The notes below the pieces were generated by a model that was not told the DNA's origin, ran no database searches, and saw only the letters and a program-made list of their open reading frames with translations. The position numbers were made by a program, and so were the translations under genes. A stretch of 64,000 nt of DNA, from sequence record KJ019146.1, one strand, 5' to 3'. Shown one piece after another: positions 9,221 through 36,518 of this stretch. Within the stretch, counting starts at the first letter, position 1. Each line of letters starts with the position of its first letter.

Positions 9221-10120
9221 ATGAAGGAACGCAGAAAGTATCCAACCGTATTGAGGTATCCAGGCGGTAAGTCTAGGATTATCTACTATTTGTTTAGGGA
9301 AAATATGATCCCTAAGAATGTCAAGGAATACCGTGAGGGTTTCCTAGGTGGGGGTTCTTGTGCTCTTGCGTTCTCTGTGATGTACCCAAACACCCCAGTT
9401 TGGGTCAATGATCTTTACTACAATCTGTATATCTTCTGGACACAACTCCAGAAGAATCCAGATCCACTCATCAATCGTCTCCTAGAACTAAAGGACGAAG
9501 CCTGTGATGCATCAGGTACAGAAGAACTAGAGAAAAAGCATAGAAAACTCTACACAGATATGCGTGATCTCATTAACACCTCTAGTGATCACCTTGATAT
9601 TGCAACCTCCTTCTACATTCTAAACCGATCTAGTTTCGGTGGATTCACTGAACAAAACAAGAATGCCTTCATCCGAGACTCATACAAGAATACTATTTTC
9701 TCTCAGAGTAAAATCCGTAAGTTGGCTAATATCTCTGAGATTATCCAACCCTGGAGAATTACCAATACACACTACAAGGAACTAATGAGAACTCCTGGTG
9801 ATGATGTATTTGTGTTCCTAGACCCTCCATATCTAATCAAGGATATGTTGTATGGTAAGGACAAGGAGATGCACACTGGGTTCTCTCATGAAGAGTTTGT
9901 GAGTGAGTGTAAAGGTTCTACACATGACTGGATGATTACCTACAATGAACATGAGTGGTTGAGATCCCAGTTCGCTGACTATCATATGGAGTCTTTCGAG
10001 TTCCGTTATAGTCTCGCCCACAGGGAAGAGAATGGCAACAAGAAAGAAGAACTCCTCATAATGAACTATGAGATTCCTCGTGATATCCCAAACCCACTAG
10101 AGGTAGTTTTGTATGGATGA
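9221..10120 (+). CDS. dam: DNA adenine methyltransferase (Dam/D12 class)
   Basis: LRYPGGKS, FLGGGS, NDL and FLDPPY motifs. Target sequence unknown. Confidence 0.88.
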   Translation: MKERRKYPTVLRYPGGKSRIIYYLFRENMIPKNVKEYREGFLGGGSCALAFSVMYPNTPVWVNDLYYNLYIFWTQLQKNPDPLINRLLELKDEACDASGTEELEKKHRKLYTDMRDLINTSSDHLDIATSFYILNRSSFGGFTEQNKNAFIRDSYKNTIFSQSKIRKLANISEIIQPWRITNTHYKELMRTPGDDVFVFLDPPYLIKDMLYGKDKEMHTGFSHEEFVSECKGSTHDWMITYNEHEWLRSQFADYHMESFEFRYSLAHREENGNKKEELLIMNYEIPRDIPNPLEVVLYG

Positions 10121-10568
10121 TCTAGAGCTAGAGTATCATCTTTATCTGGATGGAAACCCTATTCAGACACTGAAGGATGACGCTAGTACAATGACTTTAG
10201 CCAAGAAGAGAGTTATCGGTCCTTACATTCGTAGAGCTGAATCTTTTATTAAAATATCAGAACCATTTAGGGAACTACTTCGTCTTGATGATGGTAAGGA
10301 TAAACTTCTAGATGCAATAGGTGTTGTCTGGGCACACTACTTTGAACATAAGATTAACAAGAAGTATATGGTTATCCCTAAGGATGCATCTCTTGATTTT
10401 ATGGAATACTTTGGTACTATGGCACAGAAGGATAAGTTCCCGGATGATAAATATATTAAGAAAGCTCAGCGTATCATTCTCTCTCACGAAAAGAGTATTG
10501 ATGCTTTCATTAAGGCTTTTCATAGTATCCGTTTAGCCAACGACAAATATCTCTCCCTGAAGAAATGA
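10113..10568 (+). CDS. hypothetical protein
   Basis: 151-aa ORF overlapping both neighbours. Confidence 0.7.
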   Translation: MDDLELEYHLYLDGNPIQTLKDDASTMTLAKKRVIGPYIRRAESFIKISEPFRELLRLDDGKDKLLDAIGVVWAHYFEHKINKKYMVIPKDASLDFMEYFGTMAQKDKFPDDKYIKKAQRIILSHEKSIDAFIKAFHSIRLANDKYLSLKK

Positions 10569-12955
10569 TCACACCGAAGTCCCTACTATCATTCCTATCT
10601 GAAGCCGCCGACTCAGAAGCCGCACAAAAGGCTAAGGAAATGGGTTTGACCTCTGCTGGTTATGGTAACTGGAGAGATAAGACAGGTAATGTTGTTGCTA
10701 GAACTGAAGGTGGTCAGTTAGTAATGCTCGAGCCTGGAGATCAATCAGGACAGCAAAGTGGAGCTCCAGAATCTGAAGTAGAACAACCCGAAGCACCACA
10801 AGTCCAAGAACCGGATCCAGCTATGGTTGAGAAAGTAGCTAAGGGTCTTTCTGGTGGTAGATATAATATTGCATCAGCACAGAGGAAGAAAGAGTTACTG
10901 GCTTCTGCTAGACAGATATTAATTAATAAACAGATCCAAGACGCTCAGATGCAGGCTGACGCTGATGCTCAGGCAGCGGCACAAAACCCACCAGAACCCA
11001 CTCCAGAGGAGTTGGAACAACAACAGGCAGATATGGAACTACAGCAACAGAATGCTGTAATGGATACCGAACTGAAGGCACAGAGTGTTGAGAACGGGAA
11101 ACTGGACCTTCAGATGAAGAAGGACCAGATGAAGCAACAGAAGGAGGCAGAGAAAGAAGCCAAGGCTATGGATAAGTTAGCCAAGAAAGCTCAAGCTGAA
11201 CAGGAGGCTCAACAGCAGGCTGAAGTAGAAGCTCAACAACAGGCTGATATGGAAGCCCAACAGCAGGCAGATATGGAGGCACAACAGGCACCACCTACAC
11301 CCAGGAAGAGGAAACCTAAAAAGAAGGTAACTGAGTTTGATGGTAACAGAGTAAATAGAAATGAAGATGAACCAACAGATGAGGAGATGGATGATATCCT
11401 AAAACTAATCAGAAGTGAAGGACCATCTACTGCTGGAGACACTATAACAGCGGCAACTAAGGCAGCAAAAGTTCAGAACGATATTGATAATACAGATTAT
11501 GAGATGGATGATATCGAAAGTGATATTACATCTGGTGATTTTGAGAATGAAATTGATGCACTCTACGAGAAACTGGGAGAACTAACTGATAGGCAGAAGA
11601 AGAATGTAGATAAGAAGTTTGGTCAGGTTCGTAAATCTCTATCTAAGATTAGTGATAAGACTAGTAGGGATAATATGAAACAGGCTTTGGCACTTGCTGC
11701 TACCTATACTGGTCGTGTCAACTCAGGTGCTGGTAAGAACGCTCTCGGTTTAGTTGACTATCAGGTACTAAAGTCTAATACACCCCGTTTAGTTGCTGGT
11801 TATGGTAATGGAACACCCCAAGAAGTTAAGAAGTTCGTAGAATCCACTAGGGTTTACAATGTTTCTGATGAAGAAGTGGATGCATTCTATGAGATGCTCC
11901 CACAAAAACTTAAGAATGGATTTAACAAAGCAGGAACTATTGCTCCATCATATCGTGGTCATTACCTAGGTCAGGATGAAAATGGTGAAGCAATTAGAGG
12001 TACATTGAGTGCCAGTACTTCACAGCGTGGTAAGATTGTTGCTCGTCTTCTACTACAACAGGGACTAAGAGACGCATATACTGGACTACCACTGAATCTA
12101 AATCAAGTAGATCTAGAACATGTTGTTGGTTTCAATAACAATGACTATGGTAAAGCCACACAAGAGGAGTTCAATCAGAGAGAGAATATTGATAACTTTG
12201 TATTGACTGCATCTAATGTCAATCAACTCAAGGCTGATAAGAATATGCAGGACTTTATCACTACAGAAGTTGATAAACTTGACTCATTTACAGAACAGGA
12301 TTTTGATGCTAGAGATGATCTAACGAATAGATCAAACGATATCAATACCTCTGGATCTACATTATCATCACTATTCCTCAATGATGGACAGAAACCTGGT
12401 GGTGATCTGGCTAAGATGATCAGTCCTCAGGCTTCTTATGAGAACTTTGATGCATATGCCGAGCGGGATAGGACAATGACGAAGGATATTAACTCCCAGA
12501 TTAATAAGTTTGCTAAGGGTAAAGGTATCAAACTAGCTGGTGTGAAGAATAGAATGGGATATGAGACTATGAAGAAACTAGGTTTGGGTTCATATATTCC
12601 TAAAGCACCAACCCTAGATGATCAGGGTAGAGTTGTGAAAGAAGGTCGTGGTAATCAATCTAAGTTTGATGATAAGGTCTATGTTGCCTTCCTATCATCA
12701 GTGATGGCTAAGGATGATGCTGGTAGAACCGCGGGTCGTGAAGCCTGGGACAACGCTAGACAGTCAGCCGTTGATGCGATGCAGGTGTCAGGTAATAACG
12801 GAGACGGAAAGAGAGCTATTATCTCCTCACTAATTGAATCTGGATACCTTGATCAGAGATTCTTTGATGATAAGGAGTTTCGTAGAATCCTCAAGGAAGA
12901 GTGTGGTTGGAGTTACAGTCTATACTTGGCAGAACAGAGATTGGGTCTGTTATAA
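10565..12955 (+). CDS. 796-aa protein: internal-head-protein-like N-terminus, Q-rich linker, HNH-type nuclease domain
   Basis: RDAYTG...DLEHVV...NFVLTASNVNQLK forms an HNH pattern. The N-terminal module is shared with ORF 16265. Confidence 0.65.
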   Translation: MITPKSLLSFLSEAADSEAAQKAKEMGLTSAGYGNWRDKTGNVVARTEGGQLVMLEPGDQSGQQSGAPESEVEQPEAPQVQEPDPAMVEKVAKGLSGGRYNIASAQRKKELLASARQILINKQIQDAQMQADADAQAAAQNPPEPTPEELEQQQADMELQQQNAVMDTELKAQSVENGKLDLQMKKDQMKQQKEAEKEAKAMDKLAKKAQAEQEAQQQAEVEAQQQADMEAQQQADMEAQQAPPTPRKRKPKKKVTEFDGNRVNRNEDEPTDEEMDDILKLIRSEGPSTAGDTITAATKAAKVQNDIDNTDYEMDDIESDITSGDFENEIDALYEKLGELTDRQKKNVDKKFGQVRKSLSKISDKTSRDNMKQALALAATYTGRVNSGAGKNALGLVDYQVLKSNTPRLVAGYGNGTPQEVKKFVESTRVYNVSDEEVDAFYEMLPQKLKNGFNKAGTIAPSYRGHYLGQDENGEAIRGTLSASTSQRGKIVARLLLQQGLRDAYTGLPLNLNQVDLEHVVGFNNNDYGKATQEEFNQRENIDNFVLTASNVNQLKADKNMQDFITTEVDKLDSFTEQDFDARDDLTNRSNDINTSGSTLSSLFLNDGQKPGGDLAKMISPQASYENFDAYAERDRTMTKDINSQINKFAKGKGIKLAGVKNRMGYETMKKLGLGSYIPKAPTLDDQGRVVKEGRGNQSKFDDKVYVAFLSSVMAKDDAGRTAGREAWDNARQSAVDAMQVSGNNGDGKRAIISSLIESGYLDQRFFDDKEFRRILKEECGWSYSLYLAEQRLGLL
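11210..11290 (+). repeat. 24-nt degenerate coding repeat (QQQADMEA-like, three copies)
   Basis: QQQAEVEA QQQADMEA QQQADMEA in the translation. Boundaries approximate. Confidence 0.7.
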
Positions 12956-12978: not shown

Positions 12979-13722
12979 ATGCAGAGTTTTGATGTTGTTA
13001 TTGGCAACCCCCCATACCAGGATGGTAGTGGGGATAAAGAGAAGGGGTTATCTGGATCAAAGAAGAACCTATACTCTGCCTTTATCACCAAGAGTATTGA
13101 ACTACTAAAACCCAACGGATATCTATCATATATCTGTCCACCTGGATACATCAAAACAACTTCTATTGAGAAACCCTCACCACTATTCAAACTAATCCAA
13201 CAGTATAATCTTATCTCTGTTGACTTCAATTGTAAGAAATACTTTCCAACAGTCTCCCTACCAGTCATCACCCGTTTCCTTCTACAGAACACAAAGGAAT
13301 ATAAGGGAACTGATTTTGGTAGTGAGGTCATTGATATTTCTCTTATGGATTATATACCTATCCATTGTTCCAAAGATACACTGAAACGGTTAGAAGAGGT
13401 AGTATCCAAGAAGAAAACCCTAAACTTTAAGAGAGATGATAGTTTTGGGGTAGTGAATAAGTGTATCAAAGACAAAACTAACTTTGTCGTTATAGCACAA
13501 GTATCACCATCCAAACTAGAAGTTTGTGTGAATGATGTATTGATAAATAAAAAGGGAAACAGGAAACCAGTTCATGTTATGGTATGTGATAATACTAGGC
13601 ATGCGGAACGTATTGGTGATATAATGAGAAGCGAGAATGCCACATTTTTAAATACCACCCTACGATATGGTGATGGAAACGTCTATCCTGGAATCATTAA
13701 CTACCTAAACTATGAAATTTGA
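12979..13722 (+). CDS. N6-adenine methyltransferase-like protein, motif IV plus TRD only
   Basis: Begins MQSFDVVIGNPPY; NLYSAFITKS..LLKPNGYLSYI; no FxGxG motif I. Confidence 0.75.
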   Translation: MQSFDVVIGNPPYQDGSGDKEKGLSGSKKNLYSAFITKSIELLKPNGYLSYICPPGYIKTTSIEKPSPLFKLIQQYNLISVDFNCKKYFPTVSLPVITRFLLQNTKEYKGTDFGSEVIDISLMDYIPIHCSKDTLKRLEEVVSKKKTLNFKRDDSFGVVNKCIKDKTNFVVIAQVSPSKLEVCVNDVLINKKGNRKPVHVMVCDNTRHAERIGDIMRSENATFLNTTLRYGDGNVYPGIINYLNYEI

Positions 13723-14617
13723 TGTTGTTATTGGCAACCCTCCATATCAGAATCCTGATGGTGTAAAGAACAAGAAGATCTGGTTATCTTTCTTTGATCT
13801 TGGTGTCTCCCTCCTAAAGAAGGGTGGCACCATGTGTTATATCACGCCCACCACTCACTTCTGGAGTTTGGGTAGAAAGTGGCAAACTGGTGTGTCTGCT
13901 GATATTCTACTGAAACAGAACAACCTTCGTAGTGTAGATTTCACTACATCCAAACACTTCCCACAGGTTGGTGACTACATCTGCAACTATGTTCTACGCA
14001 AAGAACCTCCCAGTGGTATGGTAGATGTTATTGAGAAAGATGGGACAGAGGTTCTACGCCCACATAATGATGTCTATGATTGTGATGAGGAGAGACAAAA
14101 GGCAAAGTTCTTCTCTGCTATGAGAGAACTACGAGAGAAGTATGGGAAGTATCATATTCCCCACGACACAAGAGATAAGAGTCATTATAGTCAGACACAG
14201 GAGGGTGTGTATCAGCATCCTACTTATATTTCGGCAGCAAAACAGATATGGTATGCTGACAGTCCTACACTAGGAACTGATACATTAAAGATTATTATGA
14301 ATATGTCTTCCTACTTCTGGAATATCAATGATACTCAGAAGTATATGAGGATTGATTCAGGTCCTGGTGTTGGGTTATTGGGAAGAATGTTGGCAATTGA
14401 TAGTGTGAAGGATGGTGAGAAGATAGTTGAGTACCTAACTTCACCACTAGTGAAGTTCTACATTGACTGTATGAAGAGGACATCCCCATGGAACCACGCG
14501 ATGTATCAGTTACCAAAGTGTCACCATATGACAGAGAGTGAGATCCTAGATGAGATGGGTTGGACTAGAGACCAGTTTGAAGAAATGTATCCAGAACGTC
14601 TGGAAACCAAAGTATAG
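13712..14617 (+). CDS. N6-adenine methyltransferase-like protein, motif IV plus TRD only
   Basis: Begins MKFDVVIGNPPY; LLKKGGTMCYITP; no motif I. Confidence 0.75.
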   Translation: MKFDVVIGNPPYQNPDGVKNKKIWLSFFDLGVSLLKKGGTMCYITPTTHFWSLGRKWQTGVSADILLKQNNLRSVDFTTSKHFPQVGDYICNYVLRKEPPSGMVDVIEKDGTEVLRPHNDVYDCDEERQKAKFFSAMRELREKYGKYHIPHDTRDKSHYSQTQEGVYQHPTYISAAKQIWYADSPTLGTDTLKIIMNMSSYFWNINDTQKYMRIDSGPGVGLLGRMLAIDSVKDGEKIVEYLTSPLVKFYIDCMKRTSPWNHAMYQLPKCHHMTESEILDEMGWTRDQFEEMYPERLETKV

Positions 14618-14646
14618 TTGACAAGGGACCCCAGGTGTGTTATACT
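14618..14646 (+). promoter_or_regulatory. sigma70-type early promoter
   Basis: TTGACA (14618-14623), N17, TATACT (14641-14646). Confidence 0.85.
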
Positions 14647-14671: not shown

Positions 14672-15553
14672 ATGGTGAAACCCCTGTTTAAGTGGACTGG
14701 TGGAAAGGGGCGACTATTCCAGAAGTATCAAGATCTAAATTTCTTCCCAGAGGCAGACAGGTTCGACACATTTGTTGACCTGTTTTTTGGTGCTGGGTCA
14801 GTGAGTCTTTGGGTTGCGGAGAAGTATCCAGATAAGAAACTTATTATTAATGATAAGAACACGGAACTTATGGGGTTATATACCCAAATACGTGACAACT
14901 GGGGTGAGTTTAGTGAGCACTATAAGAGAGTGTATAACGTATTCCTAGACACCCCAATAGAGAAAAGAAAGGCACTCTACAACTGCTATAAGAAGAGATA
15001 CGCATGGAACTATAAGTGGTTGTCAGAAGCAGAAATTGCGGCAAACCTCCTGGTTATGATGAAGATTAACTTCAATGGTATTTGGCTAGCTTATAAGATG
15101 TATGGTCGTAGGTATTCTACGGCACCAGGGAAGATTGATTATAAAGAAAGTATCTTTAGTATGGAGAATGTGGAACAGTTCCGTGAAGTCCTACTACGGG
15201 CAACACTCTACAATAGATCCTTTGAGGATGTTCCTATTCCTGATAACTCCTGGGTATTTGCTGATCCACCATACAGAGACACCAGAGATATGTATTCTGA
15301 TACATTCACCGATGAACTTCAGTCTAAACTGGCAAAGTTCATAGTCTCTACAAATGGACTATACTGTGAGTCTAATAAAGAAACTGGTGATGGTTTCTGG
15401 GGAGAACACTTCCCCATGGAGAACATCCACTTCACAGATCACAAATACACTTGTGGTTATGGGGGTTCCATTAACCCAGTCACTGAAGTTCTTATAAAGA
15501 ACTATGGGAATAATATCCCACAACCAACTACCCTTGATTCCTTTTTTAACTGA
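14672..15553 (+). CDS. second Dam/D12-class DNA adenine methyltransferase
   Basis: FKWTGGKGRL, DLFFGAGS, INDKN and FADPPY motifs. Confidence 0.85.
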   Translation: MVKPLFKWTGGKGRLFQKYQDLNFFPEADRFDTFVDLFFGAGSVSLWVAEKYPDKKLIINDKNTELMGLYTQIRDNWGEFSEHYKRVYNVFLDTPIEKRKALYNCYKKRYAWNYKWLSEAEIAANLLVMMKINFNGIWLAYKMYGRRYSTAPGKIDYKESIFSMENVEQFREVLLRATLYNRSFEDVPIPDNSWVFADPPYRDTRDMYSDTFTDELQSKLAKFIVSTNGLYCESNKETGDGFWGEHFPMENIHFTDHKYTCGYGGSINPVTEVLIKNYGNNIPQPTTLDSFFN

Positions 15554-15555
15554 TT

Positions 15556-16248
15556 ATGCAAAAGAAAAACCGTATCTCCCACGAAGAAGAAATCAAACTA
15601 TGTCGTCAGGCACAACTACAAGATCATACATCCAAGTATGCTATGACTAAAATGGTTAGTGCTAATATTGGGTTGGTTGAGAAACTCGCTAACAAACTCT
15701 ACATCAAGAATGATCAATACTCTTTCGATGATCTATACCAGGAGGGTGTATTTGGTCTTATCAGAGGTGTGAATAAGTTTGATCCTAGTGTTGGGTGTAG
15801 GTTCTCCACATATTCATACTACTGGATCTATAGTTATATCATGAGGTATTGTGAGAATAACCTAGGCAAGATCCGTATTCCAACTCACCTCCGTGAGAAG
15901 ATGAGGAAACAGAAAGATAATAAAACAGAGTTGGATAAACTAAAATCAAAGGTTCCTTCAGTAGTATCATTGAATACAATAGTGGGTGAATCACTACCCT
16001 TGGATAATGTAGTTACATACACCGAGAATATCTCATTTGATGATGAGATGGAACATGTTTTGGTTGTTATGAATGAGGTTTTGGATGAAAGAGAACACCA
16101 GGTTCTCTGTAGTAGGTTTGGTATTGGTGGTGAGAAACCTCTATCACAAAGAGAGTGTGCTAAACTACACAATGTTACCCATGGTGCTATCTATTTGATC
16201 GAGAAGAGATCCATCAAGAAAATCAAACACCATATGGGGTATAAATAA
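15556..16248 (+). CDS. sigma70-family (RpoD/RpoS-like) sigma factor
   Basis: Region 1.2 SHEEEIKL; region 2 ANIGLV...DDLYQEGVFGLIRGVNKFDP...RFSTYSYYWI; region 4 HTH LDERE...RFG...SQRE. Confidence 0.88.
   Translation: MQKKNRISHEEEIKLCRQAQLQDHTSKYAMTKMVSANIGLVEKLANKLYIKNDQYSFDDLYQEGVFGLIRGVNKFDPSVGCRFSTYSYYWIYSYIMRYCENNLGKIRIPTHLREKMRKQKDNKTELDKLKSKVPSVVSLNTIVGESLPLDNVVTYTENISFDDEMEHVLVVMNEVLDEREHQVLCSRFGIGGEKPLSQRECAKLHNVTHGAIYLIEKRSIKKIKHHMGYK
16240..16247 (+). promoter_or_regulatory. T4-type late promoter
   Basis: TATAAATA, 17 nt upstream of ORF 16265. Confidence 0.7.
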
Positions 16249-16264
16249 TACTATAGTAGATTCT

Positions 16265-17482
16265 ATGACGATGAGATCGTTTCTAACATTCCTAACCGAA
16301 GCTCGTTCTCGTGCATCCAAGAGAGCCAAAGAGTTGGGACTCACTGGCAACGGTCATGGTGGATGGGAAGATAGCGAAGGTAACCTAGTCGCTATGACTG
16401 TGAAGGGTGATCTGGAGTTTGTGAAGGGAAGAGAACCCAAAGAGGAAGAAGAACCCACTGAAAAGACTTCTGCCCCTGAAGAGGAACCAACATCCAAATC
16501 ACCAGCACCTGGATTGGATCCAGAGGAAACCGATACACCAGAACAGGAAGAACCAGCTCCTGTTCCCAAAGATAAGGGTATTCTAACTGTTGCTTTTGGT
16601 AGGTTTAACCCCCCTACTATTGGGCATGAGAAACTAATCAATACTGTAGCGGGATATGCTGATGATAATGATTACATTATTATCCCCTCTAGGAGTGAAG
16701 ATAAGAAGAAGAATCCTCTAGATGTTGATACGAAAGTCTCTATCATGAGGCAGATGTATCCACAACACGCCGAGAAGATTGTTAACGATCCACACAACAG
16801 AACTATCTTTGATGTGATGCGTAAGGCACATAACGATGGTTACGCTGGTATTCGTATTGTTGGTGGTGGTGATAGAGTAAAAGAATATGAGAAACTAGCT
16901 AACGCATATAATGGATCTACCTATGACTTTGAGGAGATCGATGTAGTCAATGCTGGTGATAGGGATCCAGATTCCGAAGGTGCAGAGGGTATGTCTGCCT
17001 CTAAGATGAGAAAGGCGGCAGCTGATAACGACTTTGATTCTTTCAGAAAGGGAATGCCAAAGACCCTCAGTAACGACCAGATGGTTTCAATCTACACTCA
17101 GGTTCAGAAGTCTATGGGTGTATCTCCTAAGAAAGTTGCTGCTGAGGGGTGGGAAGTTGCCCCTAGACTGTATCCACAGGAACTGAGAGAGGCTTATATC
17201 CAAAACGAAATCTATAATATTGGTGATACTGTCAGCCATGACACCACTGGTATGGTAGGTAAGATTGTAAGAAAGGGAACTAATCACCTCATTTGTGTAA
17301 CAGAAAGTGAGGAAATGTTCAAGACCTGGACACAGGATGTTAGTCCTGCGGATCTAAAACCACAACCAGCAATCTCTACTCCAAAGGAGAGGGAAGTTGG
17401 AACAGATTCCCTTAGATCTTTCCTTCAAAGGATCACTCCAGGAGAGAAAGAGCAATCCTTTATAAATAAACATAAGAAATAA
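16265..17482 (+). CDS. cytidylyltransferase/NMNAT-like HxGH nucleotidyltransferase with N-terminal extension
   Basis: FGRFNPPTIGHEKL, VGGGDRV and MSASKMR motifs. Confidence 0.85.
   Translation: MTMRSFLTFLTEARSRASKRAKELGLTGNGHGGWEDSEGNLVAMTVKGDLEFVKGREPKEEEEPTEKTSAPEEEPTSKSPAPGLDPEETDTPEQEEPAPVPKDKGILTVAFGRFNPPTIGHEKLINTVAGYADDNDYIIIPSRSEDKKKNPLDVDTKVSIMRQMYPQHAEKIVNDPHNRTIFDVMRKAHNDGYAGIRIVGGGDRVKEYEKLANAYNGSTYDFEEIDVVNAGDRDPDSEGAEGMSASKMRKAAADNDFDSFRKGMPKTLSNDQMVSIYTQVQKSMGVSPKKVAAEGWEVAPRLYPQELREAYIQNEIYNIGDTVSHDTTGMVGKIVRKGTNHLICVTESEEMFKTWTQDVSPADLKPQPAISTPKEREVGTDSLRSFLQRITPGEKEQSFINKHKK
17461..17468 (+). promoter_or_regulatory. T4-type late promoter
   Basis: TATAAATA upstream of ORF 17502. 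Confidence 0.7.
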
Positions 17483-35591: not shown

Positions 35592-36518
35592 ATGAAAAAG
35601 GGTTCAACGGTAGCAGTATTTGGTTCGGGTGGATTGGCTGGAAGTGCCATCACCAGGGCACTCAGGTGTTACTTTATGGCACATAAGATTCTTACCCCTA
35701 GGAGTAAGGAACTAGACCTAAGAGAACAGGCAGATGTTCGTAGTTGGTTTAAGGAGAACAAAGTTGATTATGTATTCTTAGCCGCCGCCCTAGTTGGTGG
35801 TATTATGGCTAACAAGACTAGAAAGGCAGAGTTCTTACACGACAACCTAATGATGCAGTGTAATGTAATTGACTCTGCATACTATAGTGGAGTAAAGAAA
35901 CTCCTATTCTTAGGTACCTCTTGTATCTATCCAGCAGGAAGACACCATCCACTAGTGGAACATGAACTACTCACAGGACTATTAGAACCAACCAATGACG
36001 CATACGCAATCGCAAAGATCGCAGGGATCAAACAATGTGACTTCTACCGAGAACAATATGGATTTGATGCTATCTCTATCATGCCTCCTAATCTATATGG
36101 TCCTGGAGATAATTTCAATGAGGGATCAGGACATGTCCTCGCCTCATTGATGAATAGGTTTCACCTAGCGAAGGAAGCAGGTGCATCTAGAGTTGAATGT
36201 TGGGGTGATGGATCACCTATGAGAGAGTTTCTATATGTGGATGACTTAGCAGATGCTTCCTTATACTTTATGAATAGTTATAGTGAGTCTGGGCACATTA
36301 ATACTGGGACTGGTAGGGATGTAACTATCAAACAACTAGCGGAGACTATTGCTGATGTAGTTGGATACAAAGGTGAGATAGGTTGGGATACAACTAAACC
36401 CAACGGAAACCCAAGGAAACTACTTGACAGCAGTAGGGCAAACCTGTTAGGATGGGAACCCAAGGTTAAATTTGAAGACGGAATCAAACTCACATACAAC
36501 TGGTATCTAGCACAATGA
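35592..36518 (+). CDS. fcl: GDP-L-fucose synthase family epimerase/reductase (Fcl/WcaG/ColC)
   Basis: AAALVGGIMAN, LFLGTSCIYP, YAIAKIAG, NLYGPGDNF and REFLYVDD. Confidence 0.92.
   Translation: MKKGSTVAVFGSGGLAGSAITRALRCYFMAHKILTPRSKELDLREQADVRSWFKENKVDYVFLAAALVGGIMANKTRKAEFLHDNLMMQCNVIDSAYYSGVKKLLFLGTSCIYPAGRHHPLVEHELLTGLLEPTNDAYAIAKIAGIKQCDFYREQYGFDAISIMPPNLYGPGDNFNEGSGHVLASLMNRFHLAKEAGASRVECWGDGSPMREFLYVDDLADASLYFMNSYSESGHINTGTGRDVTIKQLAETIADVVGYKGEIGWDTTKPNGNPRKLLDSSRANLLGWEPKVKFEDGIKLTYNWYLAQ

Follow-up and report, generated by a model that had tools for sequence, protein, structure and literature searches.

The closest described relatives of the two phage genes treated here are the adenine methyltransferases M.TaqI, CamA and M.BseCI, in which the strands of the Rossmann sheet follow the order 3-2-1-4-5-7-6. 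The first 96 residues of M.TaqI comprise motifs X, I, II and III and provide most of the contacts to SAM. A modular organization is known from Type I restriction-modification, where a constant HsdM is combined with an exchangeable HsdS, the whole catalytic domain being constant and only the recognition subunit varying. It is customary to regard a DNA methyltransferase as a single catalytic domain, and genes such as those described below are labelled 'hypothetical' or 'DNA methyltransferase' by annotation pipelines, which overlook that half of the active site is absent. M.AquI, a natural split C5 methyltransferase made of an alpha and a beta subunit, has its break at the boundary of two structural domains, after motif VIII and ahead of the recognition domain (cited in PMC5944983). 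For an adenine methyltransferase with its break between motifs III and IV, phages included, no description was found in the searchable literature, nor was one found there for the family of small N-terminal half proteins (N-halves) dealt with below.

The DNA under study belongs to Synechococcus phage ACG-2014f isolate Syn7803C16 (KJ019146.1), a T4-like cyanomyovirus of 225 kb with whose record it shows 100% identity. The window denotes the whole stretch of 64 kb that was analyzed, the first base of which is base 124001 of the record; positions are those of the window unless the record is named. Two consecutive genes, both labelled as hypothetical proteins in the public record, and a short block recurring near their 5' ends form the core of the locus:

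12979..13722, plus strand: ORF1, half methyltransferase of 247 aa (motifs IV-VIII and its own C-terminal region), matched by Eco57I and phrog_14586
12988..13010, plus strand: 5' block, copy 1, 23 nt, coding for FDVVIGNP
13712..13722, plus strand: overlap of the ORF1 end with the ORF2 start, 11 nt
13712..14617, plus strand: ORF2, half methyltransferase of 301 aa (beta4-beta7 and a TaqI-type target-recognition domain), assigned by Eco57I and by model
13718..13740, plus strand: 5' block, copy 2, 23 nt, containing the TGA stop of ORF1 (13720-13722)

The N-termini of ORF1 (MQSFDVVIGNPPY) and ORF2 (MKFDVVIGNPPY) lie three to four residues ahead of the strand that carries motif IV, NPPY occupying residues 10-13 and 9-12, respectively, and the 11-nt overlap likely entails translational coupling of the two genes. 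Both open frames match the Eco57I profile of Pfam from motif IV onward, at positions 73-171 of 171 only (E 7e-17 for ORF1 and 3e-12 for ORF2), and phrog_14586 matches ORF1 over its full length. The proteins, which are 26% identical as paralogues, share 37% identity across their first ~90 residues and are unrelated thereafter. As regards the features of the gamma class, motif IV on beta4 is present in both, as are the C-terminal half of the Rossmann fold and a recognition domain (for ORF2 by model, for ORF1 by alignment only); motifs X, I, II and III, which belong N-terminally in the same chain, are absent from both. The beta-class order (IV-VIII, recognition domain, X, I-III) does not apply either, no SAM lobe being found after the recognition domain of ORF1 or ORF2, and a profile of the absent half gave no match in the six frames of the 64-kb window (best E 0.28). 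A previous sequence-only reading of the window had held that both genes start at FDVVIGNPPY, are devoid of motif I, end in unrelated C-terminal regions and share an identical 23-nt block, and that the SAM-binding half is not encoded in the window; all of this was borne out, the block (TTTGATGTTGTTATTGGCAACCC) being identical at 12988-13010 and 13718-13740.

The AlphaFold model of ORF2 (pLDDT 85.6) opens directly with a beta strand formed by residues 3-8. In structure comparisons, residues 1-284 of the model match residues 157-577 of CamA (Z 11.3), and further matches comprise M.BseCI 125-576 (Z 11.2) and M.TaqI 97-410 (Z 9.5), these three alignments extending over 240-265 residues, as well as residues 500-923 of BREX PglX. 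Because the model covers only CamA 157-577 and M.TaqI 97-410, ORF2 is without a SAM-binding lobe, and it represents a TaqI-type adenine methyltransferase with no equivalent of the first 96 residues of M.TaqI. The stretch SGPGVG in ORF2 was considered as a cryptic SAM motif and rejected: it sits within the TaqI-like recognition domain of the model, which aligns throughout with the recognition domains of CamA and TaqI. For ORF1 the assignment is by sequence only, residues 4-243 aligning with residues 114-354, the end, of a full-length relative of 354 aa (P0047).

A gene for the absent motifs emerged elsewhere in the same genome. Searching KJ019146.1 with the helicase-methyltransferase fusion of phage MA01 uncovered a module at 35.9-39.4 kb of the record, which consists of a 134-aa ORF, a 703-aa helicase and a 337-aa NPPY protein with a short N-terminal extension of 65 residues; in phage MA01, the helicase and the NPPY protein form a single chain of 1074 aa. 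The small gene is located as follows:

35880-36281 of record KJ019146.1: N-half ORF of 134 aa with motifs X, I, II and III, stopping before motif IV

Its product contains GEVFTP (motif X), FLDNSAGCGNF (motif I), YCVELMEDN (motif II) and a motif III-like segment, ends 13 residues past the latter, where motif IV should begin, and matches the Pfam N6_Mtase profile at positions 20-90 of 311. The search of the genome for a short ORF with motifs X and I, which had been put forward as a check on the sequence-only reading, has thereby found its target. Complementary but separate genes of one genome tile a complete enzyme without overlap; adjacency and co-translation occur in relatives and not here, where the 134-aa ORF, the only N-half copy in the genome, lies ~100.7 kb from ORF1. 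Moreover, it is only 57-58% identical to the N-halves that adjoin ORF2 orthologues and is of a different subtype.

The N-half family comprises at least 214 sequence clusters, almost all of them unannotated, with lengths of 113-146 aa in all 120 listed, and is present in S-CAM7, Bellamy, S-SKS1, P-SSM2, P-SSM5 and MA01-type phages. An N-half occurs in 35 of the 35 phage records that possess an ORF1/ORF2-like gene, records which represent only four genera. Among 80 IMG/VR loci retrieved via the N-half, 70 contain an NPPY gene, mostly directly upstream of the N-half; these NPPY genes are mostly ~190 aa long and start at motif IV with M(K/R)F..AIGNPPY, as does P-SSM2 gene 036, and in most such loci their end overlaps the start of the N-half by 4-29 nt. 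In two independent marine contigs (L095 and L097), a homologue of the large variable gene that lies upstream of ORF1 in the window is followed by an ORF2 orthologue (72% and 74% identical) and then by an overlapping N-half of 127 or 122 aa; in L098, as in ACG-2014f, the ORF2 orthologue does not adjoin an N-half. Several NPPY genes may also precede a single N-half, as in the arrays of L022, L029, L071 and L118, and five tandem NPPY-first genes followed by one N-half gene were found in L109. A narrow pattern scan of bacterial genomes yielded one locus with the same arrangement, which is too little to generalize from.

As a control set, 78 loci were retrieved only by similarity to the C-half, and their genes were scored for a separate N-half gene no more than 2 kb away:

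N-half motifs absent from the gene itself: separate N-half gene at this distance in 40/49, or in 43/49 with the L109 array included
N-half motifs present in the gene itself: separate N-half gene at this distance in 16/30

The difference lies in the predicted direction (Fisher P against 16/30 of 0.01 for 40/49 and of 0.001 for 43/49), the counts not being independent since many of the loci are mutually related. Because the N-half also follows about half of the apparently complete methyltransferases (16/30), its adjacency does not reflect complementation purely, and adjacency alone is no proof of complementation. In L116 and L120, near-identical N-half genes stand behind an NPPY-first gene in the one case and behind a complete gene in the other, a pattern that may be read as a constant small gene beside a slot with a swapped large gene. 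A fused C-half/N-half ORF, that is, a circularly permuted single chain, was found in none of ~160 related loci.

The two kinds of chain were also compared at the level of structure. The model of an N-half located beside an ORF2 orthologue (P0040; pLDDT 75.7) displays the order helix, beta1, helix, beta2, helix, beta3, followed by a disordered yet conserved tail ending in FF, and its residues 8-111 match CamA 27-158 (Z 9.0, rmsd 2.6). Since P0040 corresponds to CamA 27-158 and ORF2 to CamA 157-577, an N-half of this type and ORF2 are predicted to tile the single-chain enzyme, with the seam at residue 157/158. By hhalign, the N-half family falls on residues 17-66 of P0047, the same protein whose residues 114-354 correspond to ORF1. 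Given the strand order 3-2-1-4-5-7-6, a chain severed between beta3 and beta4 yields two half-sheets that face each other along beta1 and beta4.

It thus appears rather probable that ORF1 and ORF2 are the subunits for catalysis and specificity in a gamma-type N6-adenine DNA methyltransferase of two chains, of which the 134-aa protein would be the SAM lobe. The anatomy of the proteins and their conservation are shown, as are the pairing of the genes in relatives and the tiling of the structures. Each half protein brings beta4 with the NPPY adenine pocket and the remaining C-terminal half of the Rossmann fold, together with a DNA-recognition domain of its own, and the separate 134-aa protein would supply the SAM lobe with the helix of motif X, the glycine loop of motif I, the acidic residue of motif II and motif III. 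The beta1 edge of the small protein would dock onto beta4 of either half, completing the seven-stranded sheet as well as the cofactor site opposite NPPY, and its conserved tail may clamp the pair. One cofactor subunit could in this way work with both ORF1 and ORF2, and probably also with the 337-aa NPPY protein encoded beside the helicase, and subunits with different targets would provide several methylation specificities against host restriction, protection of the phage DNA from which is the likely role. Binding, activity and the sharing of one partner are what we infer here. Against the two-chain reading stands the fact that the N-half of this genome is 100 kb off and adjoins another candidate partner. 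The earlier proposal of split methyltransferases that share a SAM-binding partner in trans accordingly fares well with respect to the N-half gene in the genome, the pairing of its family with NPPY-first genes, the tiling and the selection on ORF2 described below, and less well with respect to the distance and the subtype of the partner.

Alternatively, the half proteins may be cofactor-free DNA binders, perhaps capable of flipping adenine, which act as site-occluding anti-restriction proteins, decoys or regulators. Such a function, which is unlikely, would suit proteins without a SAM-binding lobe whose partner gene is distant in the ACG-2014f genome, and it would accommodate odd variants of motif IV such as NFPF in an S-CAM7 isolate, NIPF in L109 and NYPY in S-SKS1. 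In ORF2 orthologues, however, NPPY and its surroundings are invariant: the motif is kept in every member of a 20-sequence alignment, where F, V, G, N, P, P and Y do not vary, and the 14 complete aligned orthologues start with M-x-(x)-F-[DSN]-V...GNPPY. That relatives so consistently pair such genes with one for a SAM lobe would also be difficult to reconcile with a binder devoid of cofactor.

Another explanation, which is quite improbable, regards one or both half genes as debris of recent cassette exchange, cut at the NPPY-coding block and left open but functionless. The two genes occupy a cassette slot within a methyltransferase island:

9221..10120, plus strand: complete D12-class adenine methyltransferase, the second one of the same island (PF02086, E 1e-24)
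10565..12955, plus strand: large variable gene, 796 aa (phrog_3561), left border of the cassette slot
14672..15553, plus strand: complete D12-class (Dam-like) adenine methyltransferase (PF02086, E 9e-21), right border of the slot

The large variable gene encodes 892 or 953 aa in sister isolates against 796 aa here. A TATAAT element is conserved upstream of the first half gene. Both in L095 and in the window it coincides in part with the stop codon of the preceding gene, to whose conserved C-terminal end its conservation may partly be due; it is not claimed as a promoter. The locus is hypervariable, with four arrangements among the isolates and three among 26 close relatives:

Arrangement A (the window and one other isolate): large variable gene of 796 aa, then ORF1, then ORF2
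Arrangement B (five isolates): large gene of 953 aa, then a complete beta-class methyltransferase of 257 aa, then ORF1, then ORF2
Arrangement C (nineteen isolates): large gene of 892 aa, then ORF2 directly

In addition to this hypervariability, with four arrangements among isolates, the debris explanation can draw on metagenome contigs that are devoid of both ORF1 and ORF2, position 12936 being joined to 14616, and on ORF1 itself, which is found in only 7 of the 26 close isolates; its differences, 0 of them synonymous and 2 non-synonymous, are too sparse for an estimate of dN/dS. The material on ORF1 is thin, with one diverged relative only (P0042; 58% identity; called at 265 aa, an internal Met lying shortly ahead of the motif); yet this relative keeps the architecture, being also without a SAM-binding lobe, and has the same neighbours as ORF1. 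ORF2 counts against debris as well. Its orthologues, recovered by word search in at least 25 clusters at 50-96% identity, are all 301-303 aa long, the length thus being conserved down to 50% identity, and its dN/dS amounts to 0.02-0.15, both among near-identical isolates and versus orthologues at 72-74% identity. Because lengths and motif residues are conserved over this range of identity and dN/dS is so low, the truncated form of ORF2 is under strong purifying selection.

It is very improbable, furthermore, that the halves are completed by a host protein, by a neighbouring complete methyltransferase or by self-association instead of by the 134-aa protein. This explanation can point to the local N-half, a different subtype from those beside ORF2 orthologues, and to the two or three complete adenine methyltransferases that flank the half genes, since the island has two complete Dam-like genes within the window, joined in type B isolates by a third one of the beta class. 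The D12-class gene at 14672..15553, ahead of which a promoter-like site is found at 14618-14646, is a member of the island and not a component of the split enzyme. D12-class and beta-class enzymes have a different domain order, none is known to lend a SAM lobe, and the N-half family is the one neighbour of the half genes that recurs systematically in different lineages. A programmed frameshift or read-through that joins the halves to an upstream SAM-binding region, which the sequence-only reading had named as grounds for its own refutation, has a negligible probability and can be set aside, because the half genes start at the same residue behind three different, unrelated kinds of upstream gene in sister isolates, no frame of the window matches the N-half profile and the 796-aa upstream protein shows no methyltransferase similarity (Pfam, PHROG), whereas nothing in its favour was found other than the 11 nt by which the upstream gene overlaps the ORF2 start.

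The 23-nt block raises the question of exchange among the half genes. The identity of its two copies extends over 31/33 nt up to a Q codon and then collapses. Given identical residues, the coincidence of the first seven codons has a probability of 0.0024 under the codon usage of the window, the shared codons including GGC, which accounts for 6% of Gly in the window; the same codon is used at 9/11 positions in the block as opposed to 26/53 identical residues elsewhere (Poisson-binomial P ~0.01), and since the feature was chosen post hoc, the significance of these chance estimates is modest. Within the block, ORF2 differs from its own orthologues (72-74% protein identity) at 4-6 nt and from its paralogue ORF1 at 0-2. 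On account of the codon statistics and of a paralogue that is closer to ORF2 than its orthologues are, the block appears more alike than descent and protein constraint predict, with the modest significance of a post hoc comparison. In the L109 array, genes one and three likewise share 29 identical nt at the same place, their bodies having diverged.

The borders of homology between isolate types lie within a few bases of the block. In types B and C, the upstream beta-class methyltransferase and the large variable gene, respectively, also stop at the TGA of the block, such that TTTGATG supplies the TGA stop for three kinds of upstream gene; a cassette severed at the block would consequently retain its own start and the stop of its neighbour. 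Marine metagenome contigs that share only 13711-13750 with the window and then diverge may simply contain other family members with the same conserved motif. Arrangement C was considered as a block-to-block deletion of ORF1 and rejected, because the sequence upstream of the block is ORF2-like and not ORF1-like, and the existing isolate arrangements include no simple block-to-block recombinants. A constraint on translation start would yield the same pattern of the block. The notion that the block serves as a recombination handle, which the sequence-only reading had advanced, is therefore suggestive only and more doubtful than not: the homogenisation within the genome, the likeness in L109 and the cassette borders at the block are in its favour, and the absence of simple block-to-block recombinants from the isolate arrangements is not.

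Tentatively, the locus may be envisaged as part of a combinatorial system of cyanophages, in which one SAM subunit would be combined with up to five interchangeable catalytic/recognition subunits and the genes of the latter would be shuffled, duplicated and replaced by recombination at the 5' block, which contains both the stop of the gene before it and the start context of the gene after it. If so, phage populations would harbour rapidly varying methylation specificities against host restriction, and the genes would be living examples of the split intermediates that have been postulated for the circular permutation of methyltransferases. The two-chain reading, if true, has consequences of its own. 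An abundant unannotated phage family of ~133 aa (at least 214 clusters) would gain a function, and predictions of cyanophage methylomes would have to pair genes up to 100 kb apart. Specificities could be multiplied cheaply, one cofactor lobe sufficing for many recognition modules. Such enzymes would furthermore provide natural material for the long-standing question of permuted motif orders in methyltransferases and a ready-made design for split, programmable adenine methyltransferases.

Among known systems, M.TaqI, CamA and M.BseCI (Pfam Eco57I/N6_Mtase) resemble ORF2 in motif IV, in the C-terminal half of the Rossmann fold and in the kind of recognition domain, and their N-terminal lobe is matched by the N-half (Z 9.0). 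These enzymes are each one chain, however, whereas here the cut falls between motifs III and IV and two genes result, the order of which in most relatives of ORF1 and ORF2 is reversed compared with the single-chain enzymes (IV...TRD, then X-I-III). Likeness to the helicase-methyltransferase fusions of Type ISP and Type IIG (LlaGI-like) is seen in the N-half gene, which lies, here and in relatives of the phage, in a module with a helicase and an NPPY protein, and likeness to DarB of phage P1 in the PHROG matches, which include DarB-like families; ORF1 and ORF2 differ from both in that they are stand-alone proteins without helicase or nuclease. With Type I restriction-modification (HsdM/HsdS), the proposed enzyme would share the modular logic of a constant methyltransferase part and variable specificity subunits, but the variable subunit would comprise the catalytic pocket together with the recognition domain, and the constant part would be the SAM lobe only. 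M.AquI, finally, is alike in being a DNA methyltransferase built from two polypeptides. It is split between domains (PMC5944983), whereas the present cut divides the Rossmann sheet of an N6-adenine enzyme in its middle, so that cofactor binding and catalysis fall to different chains, and one small subunit appears to serve several large ones.

Natural variants of the methyltransferase island exist in which both half genes (ORF1 and ORF2, which start at the NPPY motif IV) are missing: in contigs of two marine metagenomes from different studies, window position 12936 is joined to 14616 with 7 other letters in between, and such variants therefore coexist with the type represented by the window. 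On the left, this slot is adjoined by the large variable gene (window 10565-12955), which is itself a swapped cassette. Its first ~200 residues are retained across sister isolates (compared with L002:2350-5211 and L003:3333-6011) and are followed by C-terminal bodies of three different kinds (proteins of 796, 953 and 892 aa), each of which features an HNH-like D.(E/D)H motif.

An N-terminal leader of ~55 residues is common to the large variable gene (10565-10864) and the 'cytidyltransferase' gene (16265-16564), with 35% identity (E 1e-16) and the pattern ...SFL.FL.EA...AKE.GLT..G.G.W.D..GN.VA... A related start is found in the homologue of the large variable gene on the marine contig L095, and the leader could constitute a common targeting or packaging signal.

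The right side of the island comprises two further features:
Window 14618-14646, strong promoter-like site in front of the Dam-like gene, preceding the sigma-70-family factor gene
Window 15556-16248, sigma-70-family (RpoD-like) factor gene, directly after the methyltransferase island

In the stand-alone SAM-lobe family, the residues C-x8-H-x-H-x2-C are invariant or nearly so in the family alignment (e.g. residues 86, 95, 97 and 100 of P0040, whose gene adjoins an ORF2 orthologue) and would suit a putative metal site. The C-terminal tail of the family, which ends in FF, is conserved though disordered. Outside the window, the same genome carries this gene within a module:
KJ019146.1 35880-39449 (L008:1005-4574), SAM-lobe gene, 703-aa helicase and 337-aa NPPY protein

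This NPPY protein possesses an N-terminal extension of 65 residues with a degenerate glycine loop (IIGDPSGIHT). Phage MA01 carries the helicase and the NPPY protein as a single fusion.

Variant motifs occur in further genomes. In S-CAM7 isolate 0809CC03 (L007:2471-3827), another gene of the NPPY-first type (317 aa), with NFPF replacing NPPY, is followed by an overlapping 136-aa SAM-lobe gene of its own, so that this genome has a second copy. The architecture is seen in its most extreme form in the array of IMG/VR contig 3300028364_000095 (L109:3114-7888): five genes in tandem all begin at motif IV, which reads NIPF rather than NPPY in two of them, and a single overlapping SAM-lobe gene of 161 aa follows.
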